Virus record (IMG/VR): IMGVR_UViG_3300047157_000197
Location: 1 to 64,000 of that record
Length of the DNA: 64,000 bases
Reading direction: 5' to 3' (one strand)
Positions within the stretch are counted from its first letter, which is position 1. Each line of letters begins with the position of its first letter. The notes under the pieces were generated by a model, which was not told the origin of the DNA, searched no databases, and saw nothing but the letters and a program-made list of their open reading frames with translations. Shown here piece after piece: positions 34,128 to 63,726 of this stretch. A program made the position numbers and the translations under genes.

Positions 34128-34712
34128 TTGAGTACAAAAAAGCATTTAGTAGTAATCGGTCATCCTGACAATAAATCATTTTGTTACAATGGTATATTTA
34201 AAACTATTGTAAGACAACTGAAAAGACACAACGAAACTTTTGAGGTTATTGATGTGTATGATGATAAACTACATCGTGATAGAACAGAATTAATTAAGGA
34301 TTATAAAAGATTAGTTACATGGTCAACTCACATTTATTTTGTATCACCAGTATGGTGGTTTAGAATGACACCTAAGATGGAAACATTCTTTGATGAAGTT
34401 CTTACACCAGGATTTGCATATAAGTTTGTACCTTTATTTGGTAAGTATGCTTACCCAAAACCATTTCTTAGTGATAAGAAAGTTAGAACTTATATTACAC
34501 ATGGTGCACCGATGTTACCTGTTATTACTTTATATCTTAATTCAGTTAAGTTAAGATTGGTAATGGGAGTATATACATTTGTATTTGGGTGGAAACCATC
34601 GAGGTGGTTTAAAACAAAACAATTTTGGTCTGTTCCATTTGTAGATGCAAAGAAACGAGCAAAATACTTACGAGTAGTAAAAGAAGATATTAGAAAAGAT
34701 TTAGGTCTGTGA
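34128..34712 (+). CDS. Flavodoxin-fold NAD(P)H oxidoreductase (MdaB/KefF-like)
   Basis: VIGHPDNKSFC, SPVWWFRMTPKMETFFDEV, PGFAY. Confidence 0.82.
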   Translation: MSTKKHLVVIGHPDNKSFCYNGIFKTIVRQLKRHNETFEVIDVYDDKLHRDRTELIKDYKRLVTWSTHIYFVSPVWWFRMTPKMETFFDEVLTPGFAYKFVPLFGKYAYPKPFLSDKKVRTYITHGAPMLPVITLYLNSVKLRLVMGVYTFVFGWKPSRWFKTKQFWSVPFVDAKKRAKYLRVVKEDIRKDLGL

Positions 34713-42763: not shown

Positions 42764-44482
42764 ATGAGTAACGGTTATATTTTAGGAATAAGTTGTGGTT
42801 ATCATGATAGTGCAGCTGCATTAATTAAAGATGGGAATGTTTTGGGTGCATGTGAAGAAGAAAGATTCACTGGTATCAAACATGATTCTAGATTTCCAAT
42901 TAATACTATAAAGTGGTTAATGAAAACATACAAAGTAACACCAGATACTTTAAACGCTATCTGTTTTTACGAAAACCCACAAAATAAATTAGATAGAATA
43001 AAAGTAAGTACCGAAAAAAAACCTAAAAAATGGTATGAGTTTTTAAATAAAAAAAATAGTATTTTAATTAAAAATCAAGAGGCTTATAAAATTCTTCAAG
43101 AACAATTAAAAACTCTTTGTGGTAAAAATACAAAAATACATTATACTGACCACCACCAATCACATTTAGCATATTCATATTACACTTCAAACTTTAACGA
43201 ATCTGCAATCCTTTCAGTTGATGGTGTAGGTGAGTGGGAAACAACTGTTTTAGGAATAGGAACTGAAAATAAAATAAAAAAATTAAATAGTGTAAATTTT
43301 CCTCATTCCCTTGGAATGTTATATTCAACATTTACTGCCTTTCTTGGGTTTAAACCAAACGAGGGTGAGTATAAAGTAATGGGTTTAGCACCATATGGTA
43401 AACCTGAAAAGTATAATAAATTATTTAAGGAATTATATACAGAAAAAGAAGATGGTACTTTTGAATTAAAAATGGAGTACTTTACATACGAGTATTCTAA
43501 TACACATATGTTTAATGAAAAGTTAGGAAAATTATTTGAATTTCCAAACAGATTACCAGAAGAGCCATTAGAACAACATCACAAGGATTTAGCAGCATCA
43601 TTACAATACAATTACGAAAAACTATTTTTTAGATTATTGAATGAATTACATGATAAAACAAAATCTGACAACTTATGTTTGAGTGGTGGGTGTGCTTATA
43701 ATGGAACTGCAAATGGTAAGATATTAAAAAGAACAAACTTTAAAAATCTATACATCCCACCTGCTCCATCAGATGCTGGTTCTGCTATTGGATGTGGACT
43801 TGATTATTACTATAAATCAAAAGATAATGTAAGAATAAAAAATTCAAACCCATATCTTGGTCCAATGTATTCAAAAGATGAAATTTTTGAAGCAACAGAA
43901 AAATATAAAGATAAAATTTGGGTAGAAACAAAACTTTATGAACAAATTATTGATATTGTTGCTGAAGAAATTAAAGATGGTAGTGTTATAGGATGGTTTC
44001 AAGGTAGGATGGAGTTTGGTGCACGTGCATTAGGTAATCGTTCTATCTTAGCAAATCCAAGAGACCCTCAAATGAAATCTCGTTTAAATAAGATGATTAA
44101 AAAAAGAGAAGGGTTTAGACCTTTTGCTCCAATTGTAAAAGAATCTTCTTCAACCAGTTATTTTAATTACGAAGATACTGTACCTTATATGAATCAGGTA
44201 GTAAAGGTAAAAAGCCATCATGCAAAAAACTTACCAGCAATAACACATATTGATAATTCAGCTAGAATACAAACTCTAAATAAAAATCAACATAGACATA
44301 TGTTTTCTTTGTTAGAAAAATTAGAAACAATAAATGATTACCCTATTGTTATAAACACTTCATTTAATTTAAAAGACCAAACAATGGTTCTTACACCCGA
44401 GGATGCAATTAAAACTTTCTTAAATTGTGAAATGGATATTCTTATACTTCATAACCTTATAATTAAAAAAAAGATACTTTAG
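42764..44482 (+). CDS. Carbamoyltransferase (NodU/CmcH/TobZ family)
   Basis: GYHDSAA, EEERF, HHQSH, VDGVGE, GEYKVMGLAPYG, SDAG, GARALGNRS, RPFAP, NTSFN. Confidence 0.95.
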   Translation: MSNGYILGISCGYHDSAAALIKDGNVLGACEEERFTGIKHDSRFPINTIKWLMKTYKVTPDTLNAICFYENPQNKLDRIKVSTEKKPKKWYEFLNKKNSILIKNQEAYKILQEQLKTLCGKNTKIHYTDHHQSHLAYSYYTSNFNESAILSVDGVGEWETTVLGIGTENKIKKLNSVNFPHSLGMLYSTFTAFLGFKPNEGEYKVMGLAPYGKPEKYNKLFKELYTEKEDGTFELKMEYFTYEYSNTHMFNEKLGKLFEFPNRLPEEPLEQHHKDLAASLQYNYEKLFFRLLNELHDKTKSDNLCLSGGCAYNGTANGKILKRTNFKNLYIPPAPSDAGSAIGCGLDYYYKSKDNVRIKNSNPYLGPMYSKDEIFEATEKYKDKIWVETKLYEQIIDIVAEEIKDGSVIGWFQGRMEFGARALGNRSILANPRDPQMKSRLNKMIKKREGFRPFAPIVKESSSTSYFNYEDTVPYMNQVVKVKSHHAKNLPAITHIDNSARIQTLNKNQHRHMFSLLEKLETINDYPIVINTSFNLKDQTMVLTPEDAIKTFLNCEMDILILHNLIIKKKIL

Positions 44483-45066: not shown

Positions 45067-45480
45067 ATGAGTACAGATTTTGAATTATTTCCTGGTAAGA
45101 ACCTTAGTGGATTGTTTAAAGATATCTATGAGAATCAACAAAACAAGAAACAAAGAATTTCTGAGCTAATTGCTGAAATGAAAACAGTAATTAGACATGC
45201 AGGGGATATGGCAGTAATTGGGCCAATCATAAAAGATTTAGTTGATACATCAGTTAAGAATGATGATTCACTAATCAAGATGGCAGCAATTGCACAAAGA
45301 ATTATTGGAGCATCACAAAAAGCAGAAGGGGATAGTGGATTTCTTTCTGATGATGAAAAAGAACAATTACTAAAACAATTGGATGAAACTATTTCACAAG
45401 TAGCAGATGAACAAGATATAAAAGTTGATGAACTTACTAATGAAGTAGAAGAATTAAAACAAAAGGTAAGTAATGCGTAG
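45067..45480 (+). CDS. Helical hypothetical protein
   Basis: 137 aa coiled-coil-rich. Confidence 0.65.
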   Translation: MSTDFELFPGKNLSGLFKDIYENQQNKKQRISELIAEMKTVIRHAGDMAVIGPIIKDLVDTSVKNDDSLIKMAAIAQRIIGASQKAEGDSGFLSDDEKEQLLKQLDETISQVADEQDIKVDELTNEVEELKQKVSNA

Positions 45481-49293: not shown

Positions 49294-51318
49294 ATGGCAT
49301 TAAATAGTATAAATAGAAATCCAAATAGTGGTAGAGATATTAAGTATCTTAATAAAGATTTTTCTCAATTTAGACAAAATCTAATTGAGTACGCAAAAAC
49401 TTATTTCCCAACAACCTATTCAGATTTTAATGAAGCATCACCTGGAATGATGTTTATAGAAATGGCATCATATCTTGGAGATGTACTTTCATATTATACA
49501 GATGATACTTTAAAAGAATCGTTAATAACAACAGCAGAAGATAGAGAGAACATAATTGCACTGGCCGAGTACTTGGGTTATAAACCAAAAGTAACCTCTC
49601 CAGCGATTGTTAAATTGAGTGTATATCAAACAGTTCCAGTCATTGGTGCAGGTACAACCGAAGTTAGACCCGATGATAGATATTATTTAAGAATACCAGA
49701 AGGAATGACAGTAACTGCCACAACTCAAGGACAACAATTTAGAAGTACTGAAATGGTAGATTTTGCATCTGAGGATGATAGAGAAGTTTCAATTTATAGA
49801 ACGGATGATGATGGAGAACCAACTCTTTATTTAATTAAAAAATATGTAAATGCAATATCAGGTCAATTGGTAAGTGTAACTCATAATTTTGGTTCATCTC
49901 CTTCTCAATTTTCTAAAATACCTTTAGTTGAAAATAATATAATAGATATTGTAGATGTAAGAGATTCCAATGGAAATAAATGGTATCATGTTCCTTACCT
50001 AGCACAAGAAATGGTTTTTTCTGACTACGCAACAAGTGATACAACAGATAAAGAGTTAGCACAATTTAAAGAATCGGTACCAAGTATTTTAAAAACTTTA
50101 AAAACAACGAGAAGATTTACAACAAAAGTAAATGCAGATAATACAACAACTCTTGTATTTGGTGCAGGAAACTCAACTTCATCAGATGAGCAATTAATTC
50201 CAAACTTTAAAAATGTTGGTTTAGGATTAAAATCTTCAATTGATAATTTAGGTGCATCTTTTGACCCATCAAATTTTTTAAAAACAACATCATACGGACA
50301 GGCACCAACTGGTGAATTTACAATTGATTATATTATAGGTGGTGGAGTTGGTTCTAATGTTGGTGTTGGAGAATTGGTACAACTAGATAGAATAACTTTT
50401 CAAGATGATAGAGAAACCTTTACAACAGATGCAGAAAGACGTTTACTACAACAATGTAAAAATTCAGTAGCATGTGATAACGAGGAAGCTGGTACAGGTG
50501 GTAAGGGTGCAGATACATCCGATGAAATTAAACAAAACGCATTAGCTAATTTTGGTTCACAAAATAGAGCAGTAACAAGAAAAGATTACCAAGTAAGAGC
50601 ACTTTCATTACCTGCAAAGTATGGTGGAATTGCTAAAGCATATTGTGCACCAGATGGTGAACTTGATAACAACTCACCTTCTTCTATTCTTACAGATAAA
50701 AATTCTTTAGAAGAATTTGTAGGATTGGTAGAACAATTAAAAGATTCAGATTCATCTCAGCAAGAAATTAAAAATAGAGTTGTAAAATATCTTGGTAGTA
50801 AAAAGAAAAACATAACTGAAAAAAATAACCCATTTGCAATTAACTTATATGTTTTAGGATATAATTCAGATAAAAATCTTTCAACATTAAATCAAGCTAT
50901 TAAAGAAAATTTAAAAACATATATAAGTGAATATAGAATGTTAACAGATGGTATTAATATTTTAAATGGATTTATTATTAACATTGGTGTTGAATTTGAA
51001 ATAAAAGTTTACAATGGGTATAATAAAAGACAAGTACTTACAAGAACTCAGATAGAAATACAAAATTATTTCAATATTGATAAATGGGCATTTAATATGC
51101 CAATTAATATTTCTGAGGTAGAGTTATTAATAGCAGGTGTAGAGGGAGTTCAATCTGTACCAAAGTGTGAAATCGTTAACAAATGTTTAGGAAACTATTC
51201 ACAAAATTCATATAACATAATAGATGCAACTAAAGGTAAGATAGTTTATCCATCTTTAGACCCATCGATATTTGAAGTTAAGTTTCCAAATAAAGATATA
51301 AGAGGGAGAGTAGTATAA
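49294..51318 (+). CDS. Baseplate wedge subunit, T4 gp6-like
   Basis: DFSQFRQNL, SDFNEASPGMMFIE, YLGYKP, QNRAVTRKDY. Confidence 0.85.
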   Translation: MALNSINRNPNSGRDIKYLNKDFSQFRQNLIEYAKTYFPTTYSDFNEASPGMMFIEMASYLGDVLSYYTDDTLKESLITTAEDRENIIALAEYLGYKPKVTSPAIVKLSVYQTVPVIGAGTTEVRPDDRYYLRIPEGMTVTATTQGQQFRSTEMVDFASEDDREVSIYRTDDDGEPTLYLIKKYVNAISGQLVSVTHNFGSSPSQFSKIPLVENNIIDIVDVRDSNGNKWYHVPYLAQEMVFSDYATSDTTDKELAQFKESVPSILKTLKTTRRFTTKVNADNTTTLVFGAGNSTSSDEQLIPNFKNVGLGLKSSIDNLGASFDPSNFLKTTSYGQAPTGEFTIDYIIGGGVGSNVGVGELVQLDRITFQDDRETFTTDAERRLLQQCKNSVACDNEEAGTGGKGADTSDEIKQNALANFGSQNRAVTRKDYQVRALSLPAKYGGIAKAYCAPDGELDNNSPSSILTDKNSLEEFVGLVEQLKDSDSSQQEIKNRVVKYLGSKKKNITEKNNPFAINLYVLGYNSDKNLSTLNQAIKENLKTYISEYRMLTDGINILNGFIINIGVEFEIKVYNGYNKRQVLTRTQIEIQNYFNIDKWAFNMPINISEVELLIAGVEGVQSVPKCEIVNKCLGNYSQNSYNIIDATKGKIVYPSLDPSIFEVKFPNKDIRGRVV

Positions 51319-52376
51319 TGTATTATTTTGTAACAGCATCCAAAGATTCAACAATTTATCTTCAACAACCAGGTCAAAATACTGGTAGAGATGAGATATT
51401 AGAAATATCTAAAATTTATTATGGTAATCTTAAAGATATTGCTCGTTCTTTAATTAAATTTGATACAGCACCACTATCTGAATCTATTGCAAGTGGAGAA
51501 ATAACAATGAGTTCTGCAGAAATGCTTTTAACACATTGTGTAGGAACTGAAATACCAAATGAATATACAATTTATGCATATCCTATATCGCAATCATGGG
51601 ATATGGGTATTGGAACACGATTTGATAAGATTTCAACCGATGGAGTATCTTGGAATAGTAGAAAAACATCTACTTCTTGGATAATTGGTTCGGCATCATT
51701 AGAAAGTTCAGGTTCATATAATGGTAAAGGTGGGGTATGGTACACTGGTTCTTCCGCAAGTCAATTATTTAATTACGAATCAACTGATATTTCAATGGAT
51801 GTATCTCAATCAATATCATCATGGGTTGAGGGAGATTTACCAAACGAAGGATTTATATTAAAACATGATTCTGCTAAAGAAAACGATACGATTGATTATG
51901 GACAATTAAAATTCTTTTCAAAAGAAACAAATACTATATATCAACCGAAATTAAGAATTGGATGGGATGATTCTAGTTTTATAACTGGTTCACTAACAGA
52001 ACTTACATCTGATGATATTCATGTTACTTTTAAAAGATTAAAAACTAGATATAAAGTTGGAAGCAAACCAGAAATTAGAGTTTTCGGTAGAGAAAAATAC
52101 CCACTTAAAACTTATGCAAATGAATATGCTTATACAGATGTTTATTATTTACCAACTTCAAGTTATTATCAAGTTAAAGATATAGTTACGGATGACGTAG
52201 TTGTGCCTTTTGGAGATTATACAAAATTATCTTGTGATTCAAATGGAAATTATTTTAAACTTAATTTAACAAATTGGGAATATAATAGAGATTATTATTT
52301 AGAAATTAAAATAGATAGAGATGGTGTAGTTGAATACTTTGTAGATAAAGATTTAACTTTTACTGTGGAAAAATAA
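51318..52376 (+). CDS. Structural protein (DNRLRE-like beta domain plus Ig-like tail)
   Basis: KDSTIY...NTG.DEILEI...RSLIKFD...FFSKET..QPKLRI. Confidence 0.55.
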   Translation: MYYFVTASKDSTIYLQQPGQNTGRDEILEISKIYYGNLKDIARSLIKFDTAPLSESIASGEITMSSAEMLLTHCVGTEIPNEYTIYAYPISQSWDMGIGTRFDKISTDGVSWNSRKTSTSWIIGSASLESSGSYNGKGGVWYTGSSASQLFNYESTDISMDVSQSISSWVEGDLPNEGFILKHDSAKENDTIDYGQLKFFSKETNTIYQPKLRIGWDDSSFITGSLTELTSDDIHVTFKRLKTRYKVGSKPEIRVFGREKYPLKTYANEYAYTDVYYLPTSSYYQVKDIVTDDVVVPFGDYTKLSCDSNGNYFKLNLTNWEYNRDYYLEIKIDRDGVVEYFVDKDLTFTVEK

Positions 52377-52377
52377 G

Positions 52378-53568
52378 ATGGCATTAACTGATAAATTTAG
52401 AATCAACGAACTTGCACAAAAAGGTTCCAAGGTAGAGAGAAGAACTACTTCTGGTAAAATTCTTGTGCAAAAACTAGATGGAAAAGAAATCAGGCCTAAG
52501 AATATAGAAGAACAAAAACCATTTGGTGATGTAGTAATTAAAGCAAAAAATCAAAACCCAAAGTTTAAATCAGAACTTAATGAGGTTGATATTACACCAA
52601 ATATAGAACAAACTTCTTTTAGTGGTGAATCTACTGGTTATGTAGAGAAACCAAAATATAATGAAGAAGAATTAAAAAAGGCAGTAGATGTTAAGGTTGA
52701 TGAGTTAATTAAAAAAAAGAAACCCAAAAGAGGACCATATATACTTAAATCAAAATATGATGATTTACGAAAAAAATATGAAGATGCTCTGGCACAAATA
52801 GCTGATTTAAGAAAACAACTTAATACTGCACTTGCAGAAATTGAAAGATTAAATGGAGTTGTTGAACAATTAAAAGTAGAAGTTGATTCTGCAAAATTAC
52901 AACAAGCAGCAGCAGAAAACCAATTACAAGCAGCAAACAATAGATACATTACACTATTAAGTGATTTCCAACAAGCAATTATTAAAGGTACTAAGGAAGC
53001 AATAGAGAGAGTATCATTAGAAGCACAAGTACGAGGATTACAGGCACAAAAAGAAACTTTAATTAGAATAGAAGAACAAGAAGAAGCAGCACAAGAGGAA
53101 ACAGCAATAAGAGCAAACCTAAGTGGACCTGATAATTCATATGACCAAAAAGGAGATACTGGTTGGAAAGTACCCGAACCACATCAAGACCCGAGTTTAT
53201 TTGAAACTAGACAAATTCATTTTAGAAGTAACAGAGGAGGTTCAGGTTGGAGTGGTTTAGATTCACTTGAATTATATAACTTTAGTGAAGAAGCAGAAAC
53301 TACATGGTCTATTTCAGTAGTAGCAGGACAAGGTGGTCATGGAACACCATGGTTAGGTTTTTCAAAAAGTAATGGTACAATACCACCAAGAAGTGGTGAA
53401 ACACCTGGTAAGGTTGAAATAGATGCGGTGAAAGTTAGAGCAGTGAATTCCCCTAAAGGTAGAAGAAAAGAATTTACAGATGATATTACACTAACTATTG
53501 GTCAAGATACTTATAACTTAAAAGGTATATTTTATAGAAAACTTAGAAAAGGCGGCGACGGAAACTAA
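52378..53568 (+). CDS. Structural protein with long coiled coil
   Basis: Long Ala/Gln/Glu heptad run, then beta-rich C-terminus. Confidence 0.6.
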   Translation: MALTDKFRINELAQKGSKVERRTTSGKILVQKLDGKEIRPKNIEEQKPFGDVVIKAKNQNPKFKSELNEVDITPNIEQTSFSGESTGYVEKPKYNEEELKKAVDVKVDELIKKKKPKRGPYILKSKYDDLRKKYEDALAQIADLRKQLNTALAEIERLNGVVEQLKVEVDSAKLQQAAAENQLQAANNRYITLLSDFQQAIIKGTKEAIERVSLEAQVRGLQAQKETLIRIEEQEEAAQEETAIRANLSGPDNSYDQKGDTGWKVPEPHQDPSLFETRQIHFRSNRGGSGWSGLDSLELYNFSEEAETTWSISVVAGQGGHGTPWLGFSKSNGTIPPRSGETPGKVEIDAVKVRAVNSPKGRRKEFTDDITLTIGQDTYNLKGIFYRKLRKGGDGN

Positions 53569-55292
53569 TGGCAATAAAAGATTTTAAAGACATAGAGGGA
53601 AGAAAGGGTTATCTTGTAGAACAAGAAGATAGAAAAATATTTCAAAAAGAAATATCAAAGGCTAACTTTGGTCTTGGGTGTGCCGATATGATTGAGTTTA
53701 TACTTTATGATGTGAGTGATAATAAGTTACCACAAGGTGATACTGGTAATCTTGTAAGATATATTCATTTAGATGATGCAAATATTTCTAAATATTTTTT
53801 AATATCGGATAACATTCTTACTAAAAAAATAGGAGATGTGCCGGAATTTGTGGTAGATTTAGAAGCTCTAATAAAAGAGGCTGGATATAATAATGGTATT
53901 TTTAAAACACAAGTTACTCTTTTAAATCGTAGATTAGGAGAAGAACTTCTTGATTCTAATAAATTATGGATACATGAAATTGCACCATCAAGGACTGAAA
54001 TTAGAGTTTTACCAATTAGAGCAAAAGAAGAAAATAAAGATTTAGAAAAAAGATATAGTGTTTTTACAGAAGGTGATACTTTTAGAGATGATGTAATTTA
54101 TCATATTGAAAAATTTATAGAAAGTTTTGATATAGAAAAAATCATAACAAAATTTTTACTTTCAAAAGGAACTGAGAGTGATGGTAAAAACTATATCAAT
54201 AAAATAAAACAAGAATTTAAAATTCAAAATTTTGATATCTTTATGTACCAAATTGAAACAAAATTAATCGAATCAATGAAGTATTACGCAAACAGAAGAG
54301 TTTGGAATATAAATGATATTAATTATGGTAAACCAACCGAAGAACAAGATTGTATAGAATTATCAGTTAAAAAATTAAAACAAGATACAATTACTGCTCT
54401 AATTAATTCAATTGATTTTAATTTACCAAAAAGAACTATTCAAGATAATAGTGTACTTACTAAGGAAGAACAAATAACTTTAGATAAGGTAAAACAAATA
54501 TTAAAAAGTTCAACATCAGATAATATTTATGATACAACCGTACCTCCAAATGAGGTCAAAGGTTGTACAGACCCAAAAGCACTTAATTTTAATGAGGCAG
54601 CAACAGTTAATGATGGTACTTGTGAGTATAGAGATACAATAGTTATAAAAGGGTGTACTAATCCAAAAGCTACAAACTATAACCCTAAGGCAAATGAAGA
54701 TGATGGTAGTTGTACATTTGAAAGCAATACAGAAACAAAAATATGGTATATTTGGTCTGATATTGCATCATTCGAATATAGAGATGAGTTTGATGTGTTA
54801 CAAACAATAAATGGAGGAGAATATGATTCATTTAAAGTAGCACAAAAAAAGAATTCATTTAAGATAGTAACTGGTGATGTTAGAGATTATGCAAAAACAA
54901 GACCACAAACTACATTAAAAAAGTATAGTATAAAAAACACAGACGGAATCGATGAATACGGTGAAGACATATATGGAAGCCAATTAAACTCAGCGTTTAG
55001 TGCACAATATATGGATGCAAATGGAGAACCTCGTGATACTAATCTGATTTACCAAGGAGAAAGTATTACTATCTGTGCAGAAAAAGATAGTATAACATAT
55101 CCTCCTAATTTAAAAGTTACATTATTAGGAGAGTGTGATACACAAATTAGTCCAGGCGGTGGAAGTACTAGTGGTGGAAGTGGAAATAACTCAGGTCCTC
55201 TTGGTGGAGGGAGTGGTAGAGATATACCAGTTCCAGGTGATGGCGATGTAGTAGTAGATTACAATGATTTAAACATAAAAAATTACAGATAA
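53568..55292 (+). CDS. Baseplate/tail-associated protein with two Cys repeats
   Basis: EIAPSRTEIR motif; GCTDPKALNF...NDGTC and GCTNPKATNY...DDGSC. Confidence 0.6.
   Translation: MAIKDFKDIEGRKGYLVEQEDRKIFQKEISKANFGLGCADMIEFILYDVSDNKLPQGDTGNLVRYIHLDDANISKYFLISDNILTKKIGDVPEFVVDLEALIKEAGYNNGIFKTQVTLLNRRLGEELLDSNKLWIHEIAPSRTEIRVLPIRAKEENKDLEKRYSVFTEGDTFRDDVIYHIEKFIESFDIEKIITKFLLSKGTESDGKNYINKIKQEFKIQNFDIFMYQIETKLIESMKYYANRRVWNINDINYGKPTEEQDCIELSVKKLKQDTITALINSIDFNLPKRTIQDNSVLTKEEQITLDKVKQILKSSTSDNIYDTTVPPNEVKGCTDPKALNFNEAATVNDGTCEYRDTIVIKGCTNPKATNYNPKANEDDGSCTFESNTETKIWYIWSDIASFEYRDEFDVLQTINGGEYDSFKVAQKKNSFKIVTGDVRDYAKTRPQTTLKKYSIKNTDGIDEYGEDIYGSQLNSAFSAQYMDANGEPRDTNLIYQGESITICAEKDSITYPPNLKVTLLGECDTQISPGGGSTSGGSGNNSGPLGGGSGRDIPVPGDGDVVVDYNDLNIKNYR
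54561..54719 (+). repeat. Two tandem GCT[DN]P-x-A-x-N[FY]...DG[ST]C protein repeats
   Basis: Seen directly in the translation. Confidence 0.75.
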
Positions 55293-55309
55293 AAACTAGG
55301 GTAAAATAA

Positions 55310-58300
55310 ATGCCACATAATAATAGAGAACATATAAAACCAACCCAACGAGGGAAACGAAAAGGCCAAATCATTACTGATGGAGAGAAAGTTAATGGTC
55401 AAGTTGTGTATGGTACTTGGGAATGGAATGGAAGTCGATGGATTGATATTACAACCGATTCGGATGTATTTAGTAGAGATGAAGATGTAGATAAATCATC
55501 TGATAATCCAAGTAGTTCTAAAAATGGAGTTGATATATTTGATTCAAAGCTAACAGATGGTGATTCAAATACAAAAGGTAGTGATTTAGATACAGAAGAT
55601 AGTGATTTAAAGCCAGATGGTGAAAACCCACTTTCACTAGCTCCGAGTATAGAAATAACTGTTAAGGCAACCAAACCTTCAGCAATATTTATTGATGGAG
55701 AAGACACGCTATTACAAACATCTCATACATTTAATTATACGGCAAAAGAATTATTAACTCCAAAAATATTTACAGTTAAAGCAAGTGAAAGTTTTATATC
55801 AACGGATGTATATAAAGTTTCTGCAGTTCAAAAAGAATTTGGAAAAGGAGTTGAAGACTTAGACCTAGAGAATAAAAAAGGTTTGGTTAAATTTTCTTAC
55901 TATGAGTTTATAATATTAAAAAACAATAAAATATTTACAGAATTTACTCTAGACTATGATACCTTATTAGAAAATAGAGCAGCAACATTAGATTTTTCTA
56001 TTGATACTGATGGTACAGTAATCACACCAGAGCCAGAAAAAACATTAGTAGTAATTACATCAAATGTATCATCAAATGATATAATAAGATATCAAACAGC
56101 TCCTGATAATCAAACTGATTTTTTACTTGCTGAAGATGAAATTGAATTAGAGGTTACTTCAAATGTAAAAGATTTAGATAAATTTATTCAATTTTATGGT
56201 GTAGGAATTGATGATACAACTCATACAGTTGAATATACTATTAATACTCCAAATAATAGAGGAGGACAGACCGTAACTAATATTGATAGTGGAAAAGTAT
56301 TATTACAAGCAGGAACAACAAATATAACAGTTGATGCGATAAAAATACCACGAACTGATACACCAGGAATTCCACTTTTAAATATTTCTTCTAATCAATT
56401 AGTATATAACATAAATGGTGAAGAATTATTACAAATTCCATATAGAACTACTAATGCGGATTTAGTAGAATATTCAATAGGAAGTATTAAAAGACAAATT
56501 GGAAGTAGTGGTAGTATCACTCTAGATACAAAAGATTTTACAAACGGAGTTGGTACTTATACATTATATGCTCAAGCAAGAAGTTCTAATGGTGGTAGTG
56601 ATGTTAAAAAAATTATTATTGTTGTAGAAAGTAGAGAATATATACCTGGACCAGATATAACTCATATTAATTATCCACAAAATATTAAAGGAGCAGATTT
56701 TAAACAATTTAATGTCCCATTTAATGTTAGTTGGCAATCAATCAATACCGATTATATTAGAATCTATTCAGGAAAGTATGATGTTGAAGCTGAAAATAAC
56801 TATTACTTAGGTCAGTTTTCAGAATCAGGAGTTGCAACCTTTACTGTTGAAGATGTTTTAAGAAATGCAAGAAGAGAATTTTCTGAAGATGATAATATAT
56901 TACAATTTAAATTATTATTAGTTCCATTTAATTCTCAAGGTGATAAATTAACTGCTGGTAAAATAGAAGAAATAAATATTACATTTGATAAAGGTGATTT
57001 AGATTTAAGAAGAGGCGATGTAATTGGTGATATTAGAAAAGCATTTGAATATTGTTTTGATTATTCTGATTTTGATGAACCCACTTCACCATTCTTAACT
57101 CATTATTTACATTTAGGAGATGGAGATAATAAATTAATATCAACATATGGTATTGATGATGAAACGTTCTCAGAATATGAATTTGTAAATGATACAAATC
57201 AGAGAAAAAAGATTAAAGAAAATAAATCTATTGTTTTAAAATTATACGAACCTTTAGAAAATAAAATAGATGTAAACGATAAAATTTGGATTTCAAAAAT
57301 ACAATCAATACCTTTAATTGACCAAATAACACTATTAGATGATGTAACTTCTGATTGTATTCCATTAACACCAAATTTAAGTTTAGAATTAAATGATGAT
57401 ATTGGTTATCAAATTTATGATGATTTAGTAGCAAGTGGTTCAACATCATCAGAAGCAATAATACAAGAATTTGTTTCAGGTAGTGGATTCTCACTTGATA
57501 CACTTGAGTTAGAATATACATCGGGTAGTACTTACCAATGGGAAAATTTTGTAAAATACTCATCAGCAAAAGAAAGAGTTGCAAACTTTTATTATAAAAT
57601 AAAATTATTAGAATCACATAGAAGTAAACATGAATTACTTTCAAATGCTACTGGTTCTGCAGGTTCAGTTGCGAGTAAAAACGAACAAAAAAGAATACTT
57701 GGAAAAATATCTGAAATTAAACAAAACTTTGATGCATTTGAAAAACATCTTTATACTGTAAATGGTTCATTACAATACCCAAAAAATGGTAGTGTTGTTG
57801 GTGATATTAAACTTACCGATACTGGTAGTATAGTAAACCCATCTGATACCGCTGCAGTTAATTGGTATAATTCAATTTATACAGATGCAGCTTTATATGA
57901 TAGAAATAGCACAGAAAGATTAGTTAATAATTTACCAAGTCATATTCAAGAAGATGATAAAGGACAAGAATTTATTTTATTCTTTGATATGATTGGTCAA
58001 CATTTTGATATTTTATATCATTATATTAAACGATTATCTAAATCTAAAAAAACAGAAAACAAATTTGAAAATGGTATTATAAATGACTTAATGTATGAAA
58101 TGTTAAGTTCACTTGGTTGGGATGCCGATTTAGGATTATCATCAGAAACACTTTGGGAATATGCATTTGGTGAACATTCGGATGGTACAGAAATATCATC
58201 AATGTCAGGTAAAAGTAGACAAGAAGAAACTTGGAGAAGAATATTAAATAATTTACCATACCTATACAAACACAAAGGAACTAAAAGAGCTATTCACGCT

Positions 58301-60499
58301 GCATTATCTATTTATGGAATTCCAAATTCTATGTTAACTATAATGGAGTTTGGTGGACCAAAAGATACTACTACATCAAAATTAGTTAAATATACATATG
58401 ATGATAGCACATCTGCATTAAATATTAATGGTTCTAAAAAATTAACACTTCCTTGGAAAGTTTATAATGGCTCATATCCAAGTGCAGTTGAAATGAGAGT
58501 AGAAACTAATACTAAACAAAATCAAACTATACTTTCAAGTAGTGGTTGGAGTTTAGATTTAAATTATACATCAGGTTCAAATGCTAATTTACAATTAAAC
58601 GTATTATCTGGTTCAACTAATTATTCTGCATCAACAGAAGATTTTCCTTACTTTAACCAAGATTATACACAACTAGTTGTAAATAGAATAACTGGTTCAA
58701 CTACAACATTTGAAGTTCATGCAAAAGAAGGATTCCAAGAAAGAATTAGAAACGCAGTAAGTGCATCAGTAACAGTTGGAAATTCAAATGATTGGAATAG
58801 TGGAAGTGAATTGATTGTAGGTGGAGATAGTTCAGATTTTACTGGTTCAATAGATGAAATTAGATTATGGACAACTCCATTATCAGAATCACGAATTGAA
58901 AACCATGCATTAAATGGTGATGCAATTGATGGTAATCATATATCTTCTTCAACTGAAGATTTATTATTAAGAATTGATTTTGAACATCCAAGAAACTTAA
59001 ATTCAACTAGTGATAATTGGAGAAACACAATTGTTTCGGCATCTATGGTTTCAGATGGATTAACTTCGGTATCGGGTTCAATAGAAAATATTTCTCCTAA
59101 TACAAGTTATGCAAACTTTATAACTGCATCTAATTTTCCATCGGCATCATATCCACATGGGTTTACATTTTACAATAGAAAAAATACTTCAAATGTACCA
59201 AGTGTTGGAATAGCAGTTGGAGATAAAGTTAGATTTGAAGAACAATCATTAACATCAAATTTATCTTATAGAAGTAGAGCAACAAAAAAATCATACGATA
59301 CTTCACCATTAGATTCAGATAAATTAGGATTATTTTTCTCACCAGCAAAAGAATTAAATCTTGATATTGTAAAAACAATAGGTGATTTTAATATAGATGA
59401 TTTGATTGGAGACCCAAGTGATTACTACCAAGATAGTTATTCATCATTAGATTCTTTTAGAAAGTATTATTTTAATCGATATAACGTAGATTTCCACGAG
59501 TATATCCAATTAGTAAGGTATATTGATAAATCATTATTTAGTCTCTTAGAATCCCTTGTTCCTGCAAGAGCTAAGGTTACTACTGGTTTATTAATTGAAC
59601 CACATATGTTGGAGAGAAGTAAAATTAAAAGAGTTAAACCAACTGCAGAAAATAATAAAATTGAAGCTTCTATTAATATTCAAGATAATGTAGTTATAGA
59701 ATCATCAAAAGACAATTATTTAGTTGAACTTAATTTAATAGAACAATCAACAATATCTGGTTCTACAAATTTCTATGATGTTGAAATACAAGAAGTAATA
59801 AATAGTAATCTTGTAGGAACAAAAGATAATTATGAAAGTATAATATCTGCATCTAATACTATAACTCCAAGTGGAACCATTACACGAAATTCTGGTTCTG
59901 ATATGGGAGGATTTGATATTTCGGTCAATGCTAGGTTTACTCAAGCAATTCAAGGTGAATACGATTCAACTGCATATCAACAAATAGGAATGGAACCTGA
60001 TTCATTAACAGTTGGTGGTTTTGGATTATATGGTAGTGGTTCAAATGCAATTATTACAAAATTAGATAAAAACAATAACTTTGTTAGAGAACGAAATAAA
60101 GTATTTTTATTAAAAGAGGCATATACGATTAATATTCCGAAGAATATAAGTTCGCTTGATTCTTCACTAGGAACAGAAATAGAATCAGTAACCGAATATA
60201 GACATAAATTAACTATTTTACCATTTACTGGTTCTGATGGAAACGAATCAATAGACCCAATTGTAACTGGTAGTATTGTAGAAGTAACACCTTTAAATGG
60301 TGCATTCCCAACACATTACAAAAATACAGGAGATTTAACAAGTGGTATGGAAAATTCATTTTTTAATGGTTCAAAACAAACAAGTGCAACTACTTTAGAT
60401 GGTAGTTCACCAGTTCAATCATTTACTACTAATCCAAATACTCTTAGAGTTAATGAGAGTGGTAGAGGTTCAGGTGAACCAATATTAGAAGTAGAATAA
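55310..60499 (+). CDS. Large baseplate wedge-like protein (1729 aa) with LamG-like domain
   Basis: DMIGQHFD, NNLPYLYKHKGTKRAI...EFGG (phage-tail-P2/gp7-like), FTGSIDEIRLW. Confidence 0.65.
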   Translation: MPHNNREHIKPTQRGKRKGQIITDGEKVNGQVVYGTWEWNGSRWIDITTDSDVFSRDEDVDKSSDNPSSSKNGVDIFDSKLTDGDSNTKGSDLDTEDSDLKPDGENPLSLAPSIEITVKATKPSAIFIDGEDTLLQTSHTFNYTAKELLTPKIFTVKASESFISTDVYKVSAVQKEFGKGVEDLDLENKKGLVKFSYYEFIILKNNKIFTEFTLDYDTLLENRAATLDFSIDTDGTVITPEPEKTLVVITSNVSSNDIIRYQTAPDNQTDFLLAEDEIELEVTSNVKDLDKFIQFYGVGIDDTTHTVEYTINTPNNRGGQTVTNIDSGKVLLQAGTTNITVDAIKIPRTDTPGIPLLNISSNQLVYNINGEELLQIPYRTTNADLVEYSIGSIKRQIGSSGSITLDTKDFTNGVGTYTLYAQARSSNGGSDVKKIIIVVESREYIPGPDITHINYPQNIKGADFKQFNVPFNVSWQSINTDYIRIYSGKYDVEAENNYYLGQFSESGVATFTVEDVLRNARREFSEDDNILQFKLLLVPFNSQGDKLTAGKIEEINITFDKGDLDLRRGDVIGDIRKAFEYCFDYSDFDEPTSPFLTHYLHLGDGDNKLISTYGIDDETFSEYEFVNDTNQRKKIKENKSIVLKLYEPLENKIDVNDKIWISKIQSIPLIDQITLLDDVTSDCIPLTPNLSLELNDDIGYQIYDDLVASGSTSSEAIIQEFVSGSGFSLDTLELEYTSGSTYQWENFVKYSSAKERVANFYYKIKLLESHRSKHELLSNATGSAGSVASKNEQKRILGKISEIKQNFDAFEKHLYTVNGSLQYPKNGSVVGDIKLTDTGSIVNPSDTAAVNWYNSIYTDAALYDRNSTERLVNNLPSHIQEDDKGQEFILFFDMIGQHFDILYHYIKRLSKSKKTENKFENGIINDLMYEMLSSLGWDADLGLSSETLWEYAFGEHSDGTEISSMSGKSRQEETWRRILNNLPYLYKHKGTKRAIHAALSIYGIPNSMLTIMEFGGPKDTTTSKLVKYTYDDSTSALNINGSKKLTLPWKVYNGSYPSAVEMRVETNTKQNQTILSSSGWSLDLNYTSGSNANLQLNVLSGSTNYSASTEDFPYFNQDYTQLVVNRITGSTTTFEVHAKEGFQERIRNAVSASVTVGNSNDWNSGSELIVGGDSSDFTGSIDEIRLWTTPLSESRIENHALNGDAIDGNHISSSTEDLLLRIDFEHPRNLNSTSDNWRNTIVSASMVSDGLTSVSGSIENISPNTSYANFITASNFPSASYPHGFTFYNRKNTSNVPSVGIAVGDKVRFEEQSLTSNLSYRSRATKKSYDTSPLDSDKLGLFFSPAKELNLDIVKTIGDFNIDDLIGDPSDYYQDSYSSLDSFRKYYFNRYNVDFHEYIQLVRYIDKSLFSLLESLVPARAKVTTGLLIEPHMLERSKIKRVKPTAENNKIEASINIQDNVVIESSKDNYLVELNLIEQSTISGSTNFYDVEIQEVINSNLVGTKDNYESIISASNTITPSGTITRNSGSDMGGFDISVNARFTQAIQGEYDSTAYQQIGMEPDSLTVGGFGLYGSGSNAIITKLDKNNNFVRERNKVFLLKEAYTINIPKNISSLDSSLGTEIESVTEYRHKLTILPFTGSDGNESIDPIVTGSIVEVTPLNGAFPTHYKNTGDLTSGMENSFFNGSKQTSATTLDGSSPVQSFTTNPNTLRVNESGRGSGEPILEVE

Positions 60500-60542
60500 T
60501 ATTTATATTAAAAGAAAAAATTACTAAAATCAAAAATCATTA

Positions 60543-60550
60543 TATTTATA
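60543..60550 (+). promoter_or_regulatory. Putative late promoter TATTTATA
   Basis: Before ATG 60578; second copy at 60500-60507. Confidence 0.5.
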
Positions 60551-60577
60551 TATTGAAACATAATAGGAAAAAACACT

Positions 60578-61204
60578 ATGGCATATTTAGATAATACAGA
60601 AATTACAGTAGATGCAATTCTTACCAAAAAGGGTAGAGAAAAACTTGCATCTGGAGAAGGTCTTAATATCACCAAGTTCGCATTGGGTGATGATGAGATT
60701 GACTACACATTATATGAACCGGCACATCCAAAGGGTAGTGCATATTATGATGCTGCAATTAAAGCAATTCCAATTACAGAGGCATCACCAGATGAAACAC
60801 AAACTTTAAGATATAAGTTAGTTACTCTTCCAAAGGGTACTACAAAAATTCCAAAAGTAGAATTTGGTATTCCATCTATTTCTGTAAATCAAAATAGTGG
60901 TCAAGTATCCCTTACACCAACAACTTCACCAAGTGGTAATAAGCAAGGTGGATATACAATAGTGTTATCTAATAAAAACGCAGGTAGTATTGTTGGAAGT
61001 GGATTATCAGGAGGAGCTAGTTCAGTTCCTACTTTCTTAGGAGACGAAATAACTGCAACTGCAGCAATAGAAACAGGAGCAAAATTTACATTTATACCTA
61101 ATCCAAACGTAACTGCTACAATTGCAACAACAATTACAGTATATGGTAACGAAACAGGTGGTTCACAAACTATTCCTGTAACAGTAACATATGTATCAAG
61201 ATAA
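60578..61204 (+). CDS. Virion structural protein (tail/baseplate)
   Basis: VDAILTKKGREKLA...ITKFALGDDEIDY motif. Confidence 0.65.
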   Translation: MAYLDNTEITVDAILTKKGREKLASGEGLNITKFALGDDEIDYTLYEPAHPKGSAYYDAAIKAIPITEASPDETQTLRYKLVTLPKGTTKIPKVEFGIPSISVNQNSGQVSLTPTTSPSGNKQGGYTIVLSNKNAGSIVGSGLSGGASSVPTFLGDEITATAAIETGAKFTFIPNPNVTATIATTITVYGNETGGSQTIPVTVTYVSR

Positions 61205-61224
61205 AATAACAAGGAAAAAATAAA

Positions 61225-62451
61225 ATGGCACAAATACAAGGACAAGCGGGAGTAAATTTAACACAAGAGTTGGCTAACTATTTACAAGCCAGTAGTGGTA
61301 ATTTAACCTCAGAACAATTAATAAAAATAACCAACCAATATTTAAGTGGAGGTGATAAGTTAGGTGCAACTGGTGGTTCAATCTCAAATGGTATCTATAA
61401 AAGATTCGGAGAGTTTGACCAAGTAAATGGAAAAGTACAAGTTGTAACTACTGGTCTTTGGAGTGGAGATACTGGAAGTTTATCTTCTTTCTTTACATCT
61501 TCAACACAAGAAGTAGCAGCAAGTTCAAACTATTATTTAAATGCTTATGACTCATCAGCCATTTCAGATGTACAATTCGCAGTTGCTTATGGACATAAAT
61601 TTGGTAGTGGTTCTATATCACTTGCAAATGATGATTCTTCAACATTGGCAACTAAAGCAACTTATTCACAATATAAATCAATTCTTTTAGAACAAGGAGA
61701 TGATAAATTTGAAGTACCAAACAGTTCAGGTTCACTTCATAGTATAGATGATATTTATGTTATTAATTTATCAAGAGCAAGATATAAAGAAAAAATGGAT
61801 GCAGGAAACTGGTCATTAAGTTTAAGTGGTTCTAATGGAATCTCTACATTAATTGATGATAGTGGAAAGAAATTCTCAGATACAGTTGGAAAAGCGGGTA
61901 GAGTATTTGATGTAGTAAGTGGTTCACTTAATCTAGGTTCAGAAAATGAAGCAACAATAGTAGCAAAATATTCAAGTGGTTCACAAGCACAAGGACAAGG
62001 GTTTGGTAAATTTTATCCAGACCAAGGAATTATAATTCTTAATCCATCTGCAGTTGAATCATCAATTGGTTCATCAATAGATAAAGATTCTAGTGATGGT
62101 GGTGTATTAGGATATGGAATTTCTGCAGAAGCAAAAAATCATTTCTTATTATACAATGCAATTAAAGGTGGTGGAGATTTTGAAGCAAGAAGAACAGAAA
62201 ACGTTTCTACTTCACATTACTTTATAAGAGCAACAAATAGAGAATTTAACTTTTCTAATAATCCATCATTTGTAACTGGTTCAGATAATTCATTTGTTGA
62301 ATCATCTTTTGAAAAAGACCCAAAAACATTTATTACAACTATTGGATTATATAGTGATTCTAATGAAATGTTAGCAGTGGCTAAAACATCTCAACCAATT
62401 GCTAAATCGTTTGATAAAGAAGTATTAATCAAAGTAAAACTTGATTTTTAA
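61225..62451 (+). CDS. Virion structural protein
   Basis: FNFSNNPSF...ITTIGLY...LAVAKTSQPI C-terminal motif. Confidence 0.65.
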   Translation: MAQIQGQAGVNLTQELANYLQASSGNLTSEQLIKITNQYLSGGDKLGATGGSISNGIYKRFGEFDQVNGKVQVVTTGLWSGDTGSLSSFFTSSTQEVAASSNYYLNAYDSSAISDVQFAVAYGHKFGSGSISLANDDSSTLATKATYSQYKSILLEQGDDKFEVPNSSGSLHSIDDIYVINLSRARYKEKMDAGNWSLSLSGSNGISTLIDDSGKKFSDTVGKAGRVFDVVSGSLNLGSENEATIVAKYSSGSQAQGQGFGKFYPDQGIIILNPSAVESSIGSSIDKDSSDGGVLGYGISAEAKNHFLLYNAIKGGGDFEARRTENVSTSHYFIRATNREFNFSNNPSFVTGSDNSFVESSFEKDPKTFITTIGLYSDSNEMLAVAKTSQPIAKSFDKEVLIKVKLDF

Positions 62452-62526
62452 TAAATAACACAGAACGTTTGAGGTTGCAAACTTGAATGTTCACGAAAAA
62501 ATTTAAAGAATGATATCATTTTTTAT

Positions 62527-62551
62527 ACCCCACCACAAAGTGGGGTTTTTT
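62527..62551 (+). terminator. Rho-independent terminator
   Basis: ACCCCAC/GTGGGGT stem with T run. Confidence 0.75.
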
Positions 62552-62560
62552 GTTTCCATA

Positions 62561-62568
62561 TATTTATA
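62561..62568 (+). promoter_or_regulatory. Putative late promoter TATTTATA
   Basis: Directly after a terminator, before ATG 62587. Confidence 0.55.
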
Positions 62569-62586
62569 TAGAGGAGTAACAATATT

Positions 62587-63726
62587 ATGTTAAAAACAAT
62601 TCCAAAATCAAATATAAACCAAAGAACTTTTAAAGTTCACAAAAAGTTTGTACAAACTGAGGCTACTAACCCAATATATGTTGGGGAGTTAGCAAGTGAT
62701 GGTGCGTTTGAATCTTCTTCTGCAGCCACTACAAATGGAATATCTAATCATTCTTTATATGCATCAATAAAACATAAGTATTATAGAAATGATGGTAATA
62801 TTTTTAATACATTTGGTAAATACAATAATTTAGGTTTAATTTCATTTGAAAGACAACTTGAAAATAAAATAAGAGTTATCTCAATTCCACAATCTAAGAG
62901 AGGTTTGGGAATCAAACCAGGTAGTATTGAATTATTAGATACTAATACGGATATAATATATAGAGATACTGCAGATGGTACGATTTCATCAGATACACCA
63001 CAATATACTATAACTGATTTAGATTTTGGTACGGGAGACATAACAATATTAGATTCCGATAACGAAACCTTTACAGGTACTATTACCTCATTGGATTTAG
63101 AATCGGGTATATCAACAATGACATTTGATGGAGATACTAATATAGTAGATATTGTTTTAATAGATTTAGAAAATGGTATTTTAAAAACAGCAGCACCTTT
63201 AGAGTTTGAGGGATTAGAAATTGATGAACCAAGATTCGGTAATATATTTTACTCAGATGGTTTAATCGTTTTAGGAGATTCTACAAACATTGTTTCATAC
63301 AATTTAGAATATCGTTCAACAGAAACTATAACAGAACAAGAAGTTTTAATTACGGCTAAAGCAGGTGAATTCAATTATTCACAAAACCCATCGGCGGTAG
63401 AAGTTCAAGTTAGTGGTTCTTATGATTTTGTAACAACTGCAATACCAAATGTTTCTCCTGCAAGAACAAGAAAAATAACAGAATACAATGATATTAAACG
63501 AAGAGAATTTTATTCTGGTTCGATTAATCACTCAATAAGTGGTAGTTGGAATGACTATCATGAATCATCATCGATTGATAAAATAGGTTCATATTTATCA
63601 ACATACATAAGTACAATAGGATTATATGATACAGATGGTGATATGATTGCAGTAGCAAAATTACCAAAACCAATAAAAAATCTACCTAATTATGATGTAA
63701 ACTTTATAGTTAGATTTGACGTATAA
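62587..63726 (+). CDS. Virion structural protein, paralogous C-terminus to 61225-62451
   Basis: FNYSQNPS...YISTIGLY...IAVAKLPKPI. Confidence 0.65.
   Translation: MLKTIPKSNINQRTFKVHKKFVQTEATNPIYVGELASDGAFESSSAATTNGISNHSLYASIKHKYYRNDGNIFNTFGKYNNLGLISFERQLENKIRVISIPQSKRGLGIKPGSIELLDTNTDIIYRDTADGTISSDTPQYTITDLDFGTGDITILDSDNETFTGTITSLDLESGISTMTFDGDTNIVDIVLIDLENGILKTAAPLEFEGLEIDEPRFGNIFYSDGLIVLGDSTNIVSYNLEYRSTETITEQEVLITAKAGEFNYSQNPSAVEVQVSGSYDFVTTAIPNVSPARTRKITEYNDIKRREFYSGSINHSISGSWNDYHESSSIDKIGSYLSTYISTIGLYDTDGDMIAVAKLPKPIKNLPNYDVNFIVRFDV

Follow-up and report, generated by a model that had tools for sequence, protein, structure and literature searches.

Some viruses carry their own glycosyltransferases (GTs) and nucleotide-sugar enzymes and use them to decorate their virions, as in the capsid glycans of chloroviruses and the fibrils of mimivirus (reviewed in PMC4691112 and PMC7019647). 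In mycobacteriophages, glycosylation of the capsid and tail tube has reportedly been demonstrated, and their GTs are taken as a sign of capsid glycosylation (PMC11256854). In bacteria, the autotransporter heptosyltransferases TibC/AAH, which are cytoplasmic GT-B-type enzymes, hyperglycosylate serines in short loops between the strands of the folded β-helix adhesins TibA/AIDA-I (PMC4358343). The serine-rich-repeat adhesins of Gram-positive bacteria are glycosylated by GtfA/GtfB, a GT4 pair, together with extending transferases, and their acceptors are serines separated by small residues (SAS/SGS-like) in long low-complexity tracts. The general O-glycosylation sequon of Bacteroidota is D-[ST]-[ALIVMT]. 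Finally, a purely structural precedent is the two-residue β-hairpin loop of the type II' class, in which Gly is followed by Ser, Thr, Asn, or Asp and no demand is put on the residue before it.

In this study, we analyzed a 64,000-nucleotide stretch (referred to as the window; positions 1 to 64,000 of IMG/VR record IMGVR_UViG_3300047157_000197) of a 276-kb aquatic phage genome. Its outer tail proteins and those of its relatives contain about five times as many Ser/Thr-Gly-Ser tripeptides as expected, and the genome encodes four GTs together with sugar-activating enzymes. In contrast to the viral systems above, the candidate targets are proteins of the tail periphery rather than the capsid, and the candidate acceptor is a short defined tripeptide at hairpin turns, which to our knowledge has not been described for any phage. 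The TibC/AAH system resembles the present case, by analogy only, in the kind of target and in the many sites per protein, whereas the enzyme family (heptosyltransferase against GT4/GT2) and the target (a bacterial adhesin) differ. The GtfA/GtfB system likewise offers only an analogy, with two adjacent GT4-type proteins plus a GT2-type enzyme; the sites found here are dispersed single turns. As in the Bacteroidota sequon, a hydroxyl residue is followed by an aliphatic residue, and one relative of this phage, immuto, infects a Flavobacterium; however, the residue before the invariant Ser is Gly by definition and not Asp, DGS is at expectation (11 versus 9.2), and the trait is also present in a Microcystis phage and hence does not depend on a Bacteroidota host system.

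The tripeptide excess and its specificity

A first-pass annotation of the window had reported that [ST][GA]S tripeptides are strongly enriched in virion proteins, and this observation was confirmed. The translated ORFs contain 6 such tripeptides in the protein at positions 51318 to 52376 (352 aa), 23 in that at 55310 to 60499 (1729 aa), of which 22 lie at residue 709 or later, 7 in that at 61225 to 62451 (408 aa), 3 in that at 62587 to 63726 (379 aa), and 7 in the Hint protein at 20727 to 23021 (764 aa). ThyA, MetK, and the carbamoyltransferase have none, and the radical SAM enzyme has 1. The only discrepancy is the helicase (34709 to 36091), which has 3 (all TAS/SAS) and not the 0 to 1 given in the annotation. 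The pooled count of 46 in the five proteins compares with 8.6 in whole-protein shuffles, 10.0 in shuffles of 50-residue blocks, and 10.4 in shuffles of 20-residue blocks, and the largest value in any shuffle was 23; taken singly, the 379-aa protein is not significant (3 versus 0.8). In a post hoc check of all 8000 tripeptides in these five proteins, SGS (22 versus 3.2, p = 6e-12) and TGS (13 versus 2.2) rank first and second in over-representation, and SAS is fifth (9 versus 2.0). When split by the middle residue, [ST]GS is found 35 times against 5.4 (p = 2e-17) and [ST]AS 11 times against 3.35 (p = 7e-4).

The codons vary, as the annotation had stated, and GGTTC is frame-specific (396 in frame against 24 and 32 out of frame), so the signal is in the protein and not in the DNA. 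The flanks of different window sites share on average 1.2 of 16 residues, so the motif is not a repeat within the window, although outside the window 34 of the 201 sites of the genome belong to a longer fibre repeat of the form hydrophobic-hydrophobic-SGS-[SAEQ]-Q.

Genome-wide, the excess is confined to about 11 outer tail proteins (149 [ST]GS versus 32.7), i.e., outer baseplate proteins, fibres, and the outer part of the sheath, whereas the rest of the proteome is exactly at expectation (52 versus 52) and the major capsid protein has 0 sites. All 5 sheath sites lie outside the conserved sheath core, and fibres with Peptidase_S74 chaperone domains are among the most enriched proteins. In the 11 enriched proteins, SGS is found 109 times against 18.9 and TGS 40 times against 13.8, whereas SGT (16 versus 13.8), SGN (9 versus 8.9), SGD (7 versus 9.2), TGT, NGS, DGS, AGS, and GGS are all at expectation. 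[ST]xS is raised only when x is G (4.6-fold) or A (2.0-fold) and is lowered when x is N, K, R, or T.

Enriched and depleted proteins of the window

The baseplate module is anchored by a gp6-like baseplate wedge subunit (49294 to 51318, +; PHROG 10646/219), which has 0 sites. The adjacent 352-aa protein (51318 to 52376, +) gave weak CBM96/disaggregatase β-sandwich hits and contains 3 [ST]GS and 3 [ST]AS against 0.8 expected, and its 53 IMG/VR orthologues hold 163 sites versus 21. The 1729-aa large baseplate protein (55310 to 60499, +) occupies the position of the large baseplate protein in immuto and Mel-JY01 and contains 17 [ST]GS and 6 [ST]AS, with a LamG_3-like domain at residues 1062 to 1196. 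Seven of its sites are conserved in at least 72% of 115 homologues while the others turn over, and 76 IMG/VR orthologues hold 826 sites versus 181. The 408-aa baseplate-module protein (61225 to 62451, +) belongs to a very abundant aquatic family and has 7 [ST]GS against 1.3 expected. In 120 homologues, G and the second S are invariant at four sites, while the first position is sometimes Q, K, or V; sites 128 (GSGS) and 232 (VVSGS) are kept even at 33 to 38% identity, including in LR756508. Its paralogue-like neighbour of 379 aa (62587 to 63726, +) shares the C-terminal domain of the 408-aa protein and has 3 SGS against 0.5 expected, and its 73 orthologues hold 324 versus 37.

On the other hand, two neighbouring families are depleted. 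The 574-aa protein (53568 to 55292, +) has 0 sites, and 74 homologues hold 3 against 33 expected; the Thr/Gly/Ala-rich 208-aa protein (60578 to 61204, +), which has a weak Rib/Ig hit, also has 0 sites, and 79 homologues hold 0 against 26.5 expected. Away from this module, the Hint/intein-like domain protein (20727 to 23021, +) has 5 [ST]GS and 2 SAS against about 1 expected, although it is not known to be a virion protein.

Position of the sites in predicted structures

The sites have hydrophobic residues enriched at positions -2, -1, and +3. The LamG-like domain of the 1729-aa protein is the one domain that was modelled with confidence (AF2, pLDDT 85 to 90), and in this model sites 1088, 1100, and 1128 are two-residue G-S hairpin loops lying exactly between consecutive antiparallel strands, sites 1164 and 1178 come directly before a strand, and the SAS sites lie inside strands. 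Site 1178 matches the C-terminal consensus strand of Pfam LamG_3. Sites 168 and 201 of the 408-aa protein sit likewise between strands in a moderately confident part of that model, whereas the models of other regions are too poor for such an assignment. The β-turn that the annotation had offered as an alternative is also true as a description, at least in this domain.

Phyletic distribution, candidate enzymes, and interpretation

The excess recurs in IMG/VR relatives, in which 79 of 80 diverse loci show a 2.6- to 8.8-fold excess, and in Flavobacterium phage immuto and Microcystis phage Mel-JY01, both of which are in culture. Orthologues of the 1729-aa protein in four lineages hold 17, 15, 5, and 11 sites, mostly in different alignment columns at 27 to 32% identity, and unrelated fibre proteins are enriched too; the tripeptide itself thus appears to be favoured. 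The excess is absent from T4, whose tail proteins hold 7 versus 11.4, and from the relative LR756508, whose genome holds 121 versus 86 with no protein reaching p < 5e-3. The LR756508 orthologue of the 1729-aa protein has 2 sites, with NGD, SPS, or NQD at the aligned turns.

The interpretation given in the annotation, i.e., acceptor sites for O-glycosylation or another modification by enzymes of the window, forming a virion coat, was only partly supported. The enrichment survives composition control, is dispersed, and is not a DNA repeat. However, the window encodes a 2OG-Fe oxygenase, a B12-radical SAM enzyme, UvdE, a helicase, ThyA, MetK, a carbamoyltransferase, PhoH, and a CHAP protein, but no GT, and a coat is not supported because of the restriction to the outer tail proteins. 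The GTs lie 140 kb away in a glycan island at 204.7 to 215.8 kb of the same genome, which contains GT4 (460 aa), GT4 (423 aa), GT2 (207 aa), a further GT (Glyco_trans_1_2), an epimerase/dehydratase, a UDP-sugar dehydrogenase, a HAD-nucleotidyltransferase fusion, and a DegT aminotransferase. The closest solved relative of GT4-460 is the chlorovirus glycosyltransferase B736L (3oy2; E = 1e-11). In immuto, published LC-MS of the DNA found dA, dC, dT, and fdPreQ1 only (PMC10516641), which excludes bulk DNA glycosylation as the role of the island in that phage but does not exclude host-envelope or small-molecule substrates.

Six enriched lineages have both GT4-423 and GT2-207, namely, this genome, immuto, Mel-JY01, a further lineage designated G001, and the complete genomes designated G006 and G007, whereas LR756508 keeps orthologues of the 408- and 1729-aa proteins and of GT4-460 but lacks this adjacent pair. 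Of 40 genes shared by this genome, G001, immuto, and Mel-JY01, 36 are also in LR756508, and the four that are missing are PhoH, a 137-aa ORF in the baseplate module (45067 to 45480, +; no family hit), GT4-423, and GT2-207. This contrast rests on a single clearly negative lineage; incomplete contigs are uninformative and RM378 is ambiguous (10 versus 4.6, with weak trio-like ORFs), and because the sequences are related it represents at most one or two evolutionary events. A four-protein ML tree places LR756508 inside the enriched group, which would make it a joint loss, but with weak support (bootstrap 54 to 74).

We tentatively propose that the third-position serine of these turns is the acceptor for a phage-encoded cytoplasmic O-glycosylation system acting on folded or folding tail proteins, with the GT4-423/GT2-207 pair as the best candidates. 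In this view, [ST]-G-S, with [ST]-A-S as a weaker form, sits where one β-strand ends and the next begins on the exposed β-rich parts of the tail. The enrichment, its specificity, its protein class, its turn position in one domain, its spread through the clade, and its co-distribution with the GT pair in the genomes compared are what our analysis shows; that any sugar is attached, which residue is the acceptor, and which enzyme acts are inferred, as is the exposure of the sites. The co-distribution is circumstantial support, and no chemical evidence of glycosylated virion proteins exists for any member of this clade, nor did we find a paper on these phages that reports it. The occasional Q, K, or V at the first position in homologues of the 408-aa protein and the enrichment of the Hint protein, which is not known to be in the virion, also count against this proposal. 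In its broadest form, which we regard as possible but somewhat less likely than not, a very large clade of aquatic T4-like phages, including the cultured Flavobacterium and Microcystis phages and hundreds of marine metagenome contigs, would decorate its baseplate, fibres, and outer sheath with sugars by a GT4/GT4/GT2 system that reads a three-residue sequon on β-hairpin turns. This would be the first defined O-glycosylation sequon for a bacteriophage, in one of the most abundant groups of aquatic large phages. It would bear on how these tails evade host proteases, grazers, or receptor mimicry and on the role of the widespread GT islands in large phage genomes, and the motif would mark exposed tail proteins that have no family hits. 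If the motif is only structural, it is still a sharply lineage-restricted turn rule that separates closely related baseplates.

This structural reading, in which [ST]-G-S is the preferred tight strand connector of the clade, with a hydroxyl residue ending the first strand, and has spread in β-sandwich and fibre domains by descent, domain duplication, and module exchange among fibres, is the main alternative and only somewhat less likely than glycosylation. The invariant Gly, the hydrophobic flanks, and the hairpin position are exactly what a structural turn would show, the match of site 1178 to LamG_3 and the fibre repeat also favour it, and the two sites of the 408-aa protein conserved in LR756508 without the GT pair must at least have another role. 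However, the other accepted turn formers after Gly (T, N, and D) and before it (N, D, and G) are not enriched at all, and Ala, which fits the positive-phi loop position poorly, is the second-best middle residue. Moreover, T4 tail proteins show no excess, the orthologues in LR756508 do without the motif, most window sites share no flanks, and the neighbouring 208-aa and 574-aa families are depleted.

It is less likely, although the tripeptide specificity and lineage restriction call for a reader of the sequence but do not say which, that the motif is selected for another modification of serine (phosphate, acyl, or carbamoyl by the carbamoyltransferase of the window), for recognition by an assembly chaperone, or as a ligand- or ion-binding turn in host-surface contact. 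The 137-aa ORF, which has the same phyletic pattern as the GT pair, and the enrichment of the Peptidase_S74 fibres favour this view, but no kinase or acyltransferase with the matching distribution was found among the 40 core genes. The NodU/CmcH-type carbamoyltransferase (42764 to 44482, +), which has 0 sites, is the only window enzyme that could plausibly decorate a glycan, but no evidence links it to the motif, and enzymes of this type act on sugars and antibiotics and are not known to act on protein serines. An artefact of composition, of a DNA-level word, of codon bias, or of the post hoc choice of pattern was tested and rejected. The proteins are rich in Ser, Thr, and Gly, but the 20-residue block shuffles leave a 4.4-fold excess, which is replicated in independent genomes, and the overuse of the GGT-TCW codon pair is explained by GATC avoidance.

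Genome context and enrichment of the tripeptide

The window is the first 64 kb of a single virus contig, which comprises 275,970 bp with a GC content of 30.5%; its ends are classed as linear in IMG/VR, it is estimated to be 100% complete by CheckV, and 263 of its 268 ORFs lie on the + strand. It represents a T4-like myovirus with a gp23-type capsid protein, a sheath, and gp6- and gp25-like baseplate wedges. The region of the finding is the baseplate module, and its gene order matches those of Flavobacterium phage immuto and Microcystis phage Mel-JY01, i.e., a wedge, a protein of approximately 350 aa, a very large protein, two related proteins of approximately 350-400 aa, and then fibres.

The enrichment of [ST]-[GA]-S described in the first-pass annotation is real, and its counts were reproduced exactly: 6, 23, 7 and 3 sites in the 352-, 1729-, 408- and 379-aa baseplate-module proteins, respectively, and 7 in the Hint protein (20727-23021). 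The one exception is the helicase (34709-36091), which has three A-type sites (TAS, SAS and TAS; 0.38 expected) rather than the 0-1 stated previously. Pooled, the five proteins hold 46 sites, against 8.6 expected from whole-protein shuffles and 10.4 from shuffles within 20-residue blocks, which rejects an artefact of composition. Since the pattern had been chosen after inspection of the sequences, all 8000 tripeptides were ranked; SGS and TGS came first and second, GSI third, and SAS fifth, so that post-hoc selection of the pattern is also rejected. The excess of the GS dipeptide (59 observed, 28 expected) is entirely due to [ST]GS. The signal resides in the protein and not in the DNA, because GGTTC is found 396 times in frame and only 24 and 32 times in the other two frames. 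The missing GGA-TCN codon pair results from an almost total avoidance of GATC, which occurs 6 times in the genome and not at all in the window, against approximately 1020 expected in the genome; GCGC occurs once against 22 expected, and this is strong restriction-site avoidance. The sites in the window share no flanks, and a sequence repeat is thus rejected for the window.

In the 11 enriched proteins of the genome, SGS is observed 109 times (18.9 expected) and TGS 40 times (13.8 expected), whereas SGT, TGT, SGN, SGD, NGS, DGS, AGS and GGS are all at expectation. Among [ST]-x-S tripeptides, only those with Gly (4.6-fold) and Ala (2.0-fold) in the middle are raised, and those with Asn, Lys, Arg and Thr are lowered; the definition [ST]-[GA]-S is therefore the right one, with Gly the main form. 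Hydrophobic residues, mainly Val, Ile, Phe and Tyr, are enriched at positions -2, -1 and +3. The AF2 models were poor overall (mean pLDDT of 51.5 and 53.5), and only the LamG-like domain of the large protein and part of the 408-aa protein were usable. In the model of residues 690-1729 of the large protein, the LamG-like domain alone is confident (pLDDT 85-90), and there the sites at 1088, 1100 and 1128 are predicted to be the two loop residues between consecutive strands. The sites at 1164 and 1178 come directly before a strand, and 1178 matches the LamG_3 consensus strand, while the two SAS sites lie inside strands. The usable part of the 408-aa model agrees with this arrangement.

Distribution within the genome and the clade

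Genome-wide, 201 [ST]GS were observed against 85 expected. Eleven proteins hold 149 against 32.7, and all the others together hold 52 against 52. The eleven are the four window baseplate proteins; the Hint protein; giant fibre-like proteins outside the window of 1720 aa (with a Peptidase_S74 end), 2220 aa (with cadherin/Ig domains), 1794 aa, 572 aa and 215 aa; and the sheath. The Hint protein is a 764-aa protein with Hint/intein-like domains, for which the best Pfam hits cover residues 460-660, and it holds 5 [ST]GS against 0.56 expected, although its presence in the virion is not established. The sheath gene lies at 148809-151160 of the genome (9310-11661 of its locus L003), and the protein has 5 [ST]GS against 1.26 expected, all of which are in residues 101-433, outside the conserved sheath core; the sheaths of immuto (7 against 1.3) and Mel-JY01 (4 against 0.95) are enriched as well. 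The capsid protein, portal and terminase have none. In the fibres, 34 sites belong to a longer repeat, and the rest are dispersed.

The 408-aa protein (61225-62451) has more than 5000 metagenomic relatives at E <= 0.001 among the candidates scored, and the 120 best listed are 71-100% identical and come from aquatic metagenomes, including Tara. In this family, five of the seven sites are conserved, the Gly and the second Ser are invariant at four, and two sites persist at 33-38% identity. In the family of the 1729-aa protein, seven of 23 sites are conserved and the rest turn over, yet the homologues keep a median of 11 sites against 2.4 expected. Across 79 close IMG/VR relatives, the families of the 352-, 1729-, 408- and 379-aa proteins hold 163, 826, 421 and 324 sites against 21, 181, 79 and 37 expected, respectively. 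The neighbouring 574-aa (53568-55292) and 208-aa (60578-61204) proteins of the baseplate module lack the motif, and their families, across 74-79 homologues, hold 3 against 33 and 0 against 26.5, which may reflect avoidance, although these counts are not corrected for relatedness.

Pfam and PHROG searches left the 352-, 408-, 379- and 1729-aa proteins almost unnamed; the 408-aa protein has neither a Pfam nor a PHROG family. Profile searches of solved structures found nothing for the 408-aa family or for the C-terminal 1040 residues of the 1729-aa protein, and neither a megablast search with the region nor a tblastn search with the fibre repeat region found anything among cultured phages.

The motif is not a general property of phage tails, since the virion proteins of T4 hold 7 [ST]GS against 11.4 expected. 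Overlapping pieces of public bacteriophage records were joined only to scan ORFs. The whole genome of immuto holds 117 against 47.6, with the excess carried by the top 12 proteins and the rest at 34 against 32.5, and that of Mel-JY01 holds 134 against 55.7, with the rest at 28 against 25.8. G001, a 171-kb IMG/VR contig, holds 103 against 47 in the same protein classes. Of 80 diverse IMG/VR loci (GC 29-42%), 79 show a 2.6- to 8.8-fold excess. LR756508 (484 kb) is the exception; it holds 121 against 86, and no protein stands out. It has orthologues of the 408- and 1729-aa proteins, but at turns where the other lineages share SGS, it has NGD, SPS or NQD.

Glycosyltransferase genes and interpretation of the motif

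The window encodes no glycosyltransferase. A glycan island lies at 204692-215799 of the genome (6692-17799 of its locus L015) and comprises two GT4, one GT2 and one Glyco_trans_1_2 transferase, an epimerase/dehydratase, a UDP-sugar dehydrogenase, a HAD-nucleotidyltransferase fusion and a DegT aminotransferase, next to a PD-(D/E)XK nuclease. Its core, i.e., the nuclease, the 460-aa GT4 (GT4-460), the 423-aa GT4 (GT4-423) and the 207-aa GT2 (GT2-207), is conserved in order and at 37-52% identity in immuto, Mel-JY01 and G001. Among 50,697 phage records, GT4-460 hits exactly the seven records that the 408-aa protein hits, whereas GT4-423 hits only immuto and Mel-JY01. The closest solved relative of GT4-460 is chlorovirus B736L. 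Published LC-MS of immuto DNA reports canonical dA, dC and dT, with fdPreQ1 replacing dG, which makes bulk DNA glycosylation unlikely as the role of the island in that phage; papers on phage DNA glycosyltransferases gave nothing specific to this clade, and a literature search on Mel-JY01 found nothing.

LR756508 keeps the nuclease and GT4-460 but lacks GT4-423, GT2-207 and the aminotransferase. In a phyletic profile, 40 genes are shared by this genome, G001, immuto and Mel-JY01, of which 36 are also in LR756508; the four missing are PhoH, a 137-aa ORF (45067-45480) with no family hit, GT4-423 and GT2-207. Two further complete genomes, G006 and G007, have both the GT4-423/GT2-207 pair and the enrichment. 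A search for further lineages without the pair found none, since the long IMG/VR contigs that lack it also lack the universal GT4-460, so that their island is simply unassembled, and RM378 is ambiguous. A concatenated gp17/18/20/23 tree rooted on T4 nests LR756508 within the enriched group, but with bootstrap values of only 54-74.

The first-pass annotation proposed that the tripeptides are acceptor sites for O-glycosylation or another modification by enzymes of the window, forming a virion coat, with a recurring beta-turn as the alternative, and this interpretation is only partly supported. The motif is a beta-turn, and that part of the alternative holds as a description. What needs explaining is why this one tripeptide, and not the other usual turn sequences, is favoured five-fold, only in tail proteins inferred to be exposed, at shifting positions, and in lineages that carry a particular glycosyltransferase pair but not in a relative that lacks it. 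A sequence-reading enzyme explains these features better than fold constraints do, and precedents exist for viral self-glycosylation and for hyperglycosylation of loop serines on beta-rich adhesins (PMC4358343). The TibC paper uses neither "sequon" nor "consensus". On the other hand, there is no chemistry, the phyletic comparison amounts to effectively one contrast, two sites are conserved without the enzymes, and the structural coverage is limited. The enrichment, its sequence specificity, its distribution among proteins and lineages, and its co-occurrence with the glycosyltransferase pair are observed, whereas a role of the serines as sugar acceptors is inferred. We tentatively place the glycosylation-acceptor reading first, somewhat short of an even chance; a purely structural habit remains possible and is somewhat less likely, selection for another function is unlikely, and an artefact is very improbable.

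The window also carries auxiliary genes at 7429-8244, 11247-13055, 23934-24599, 26924-28129 and 42764-44482, namely, a 2OG-Fe(II) oxygenase, a B12-binding radical SAM enzyme, PhoH, an FG-GAP repeat protein and a carbamoyltransferase.
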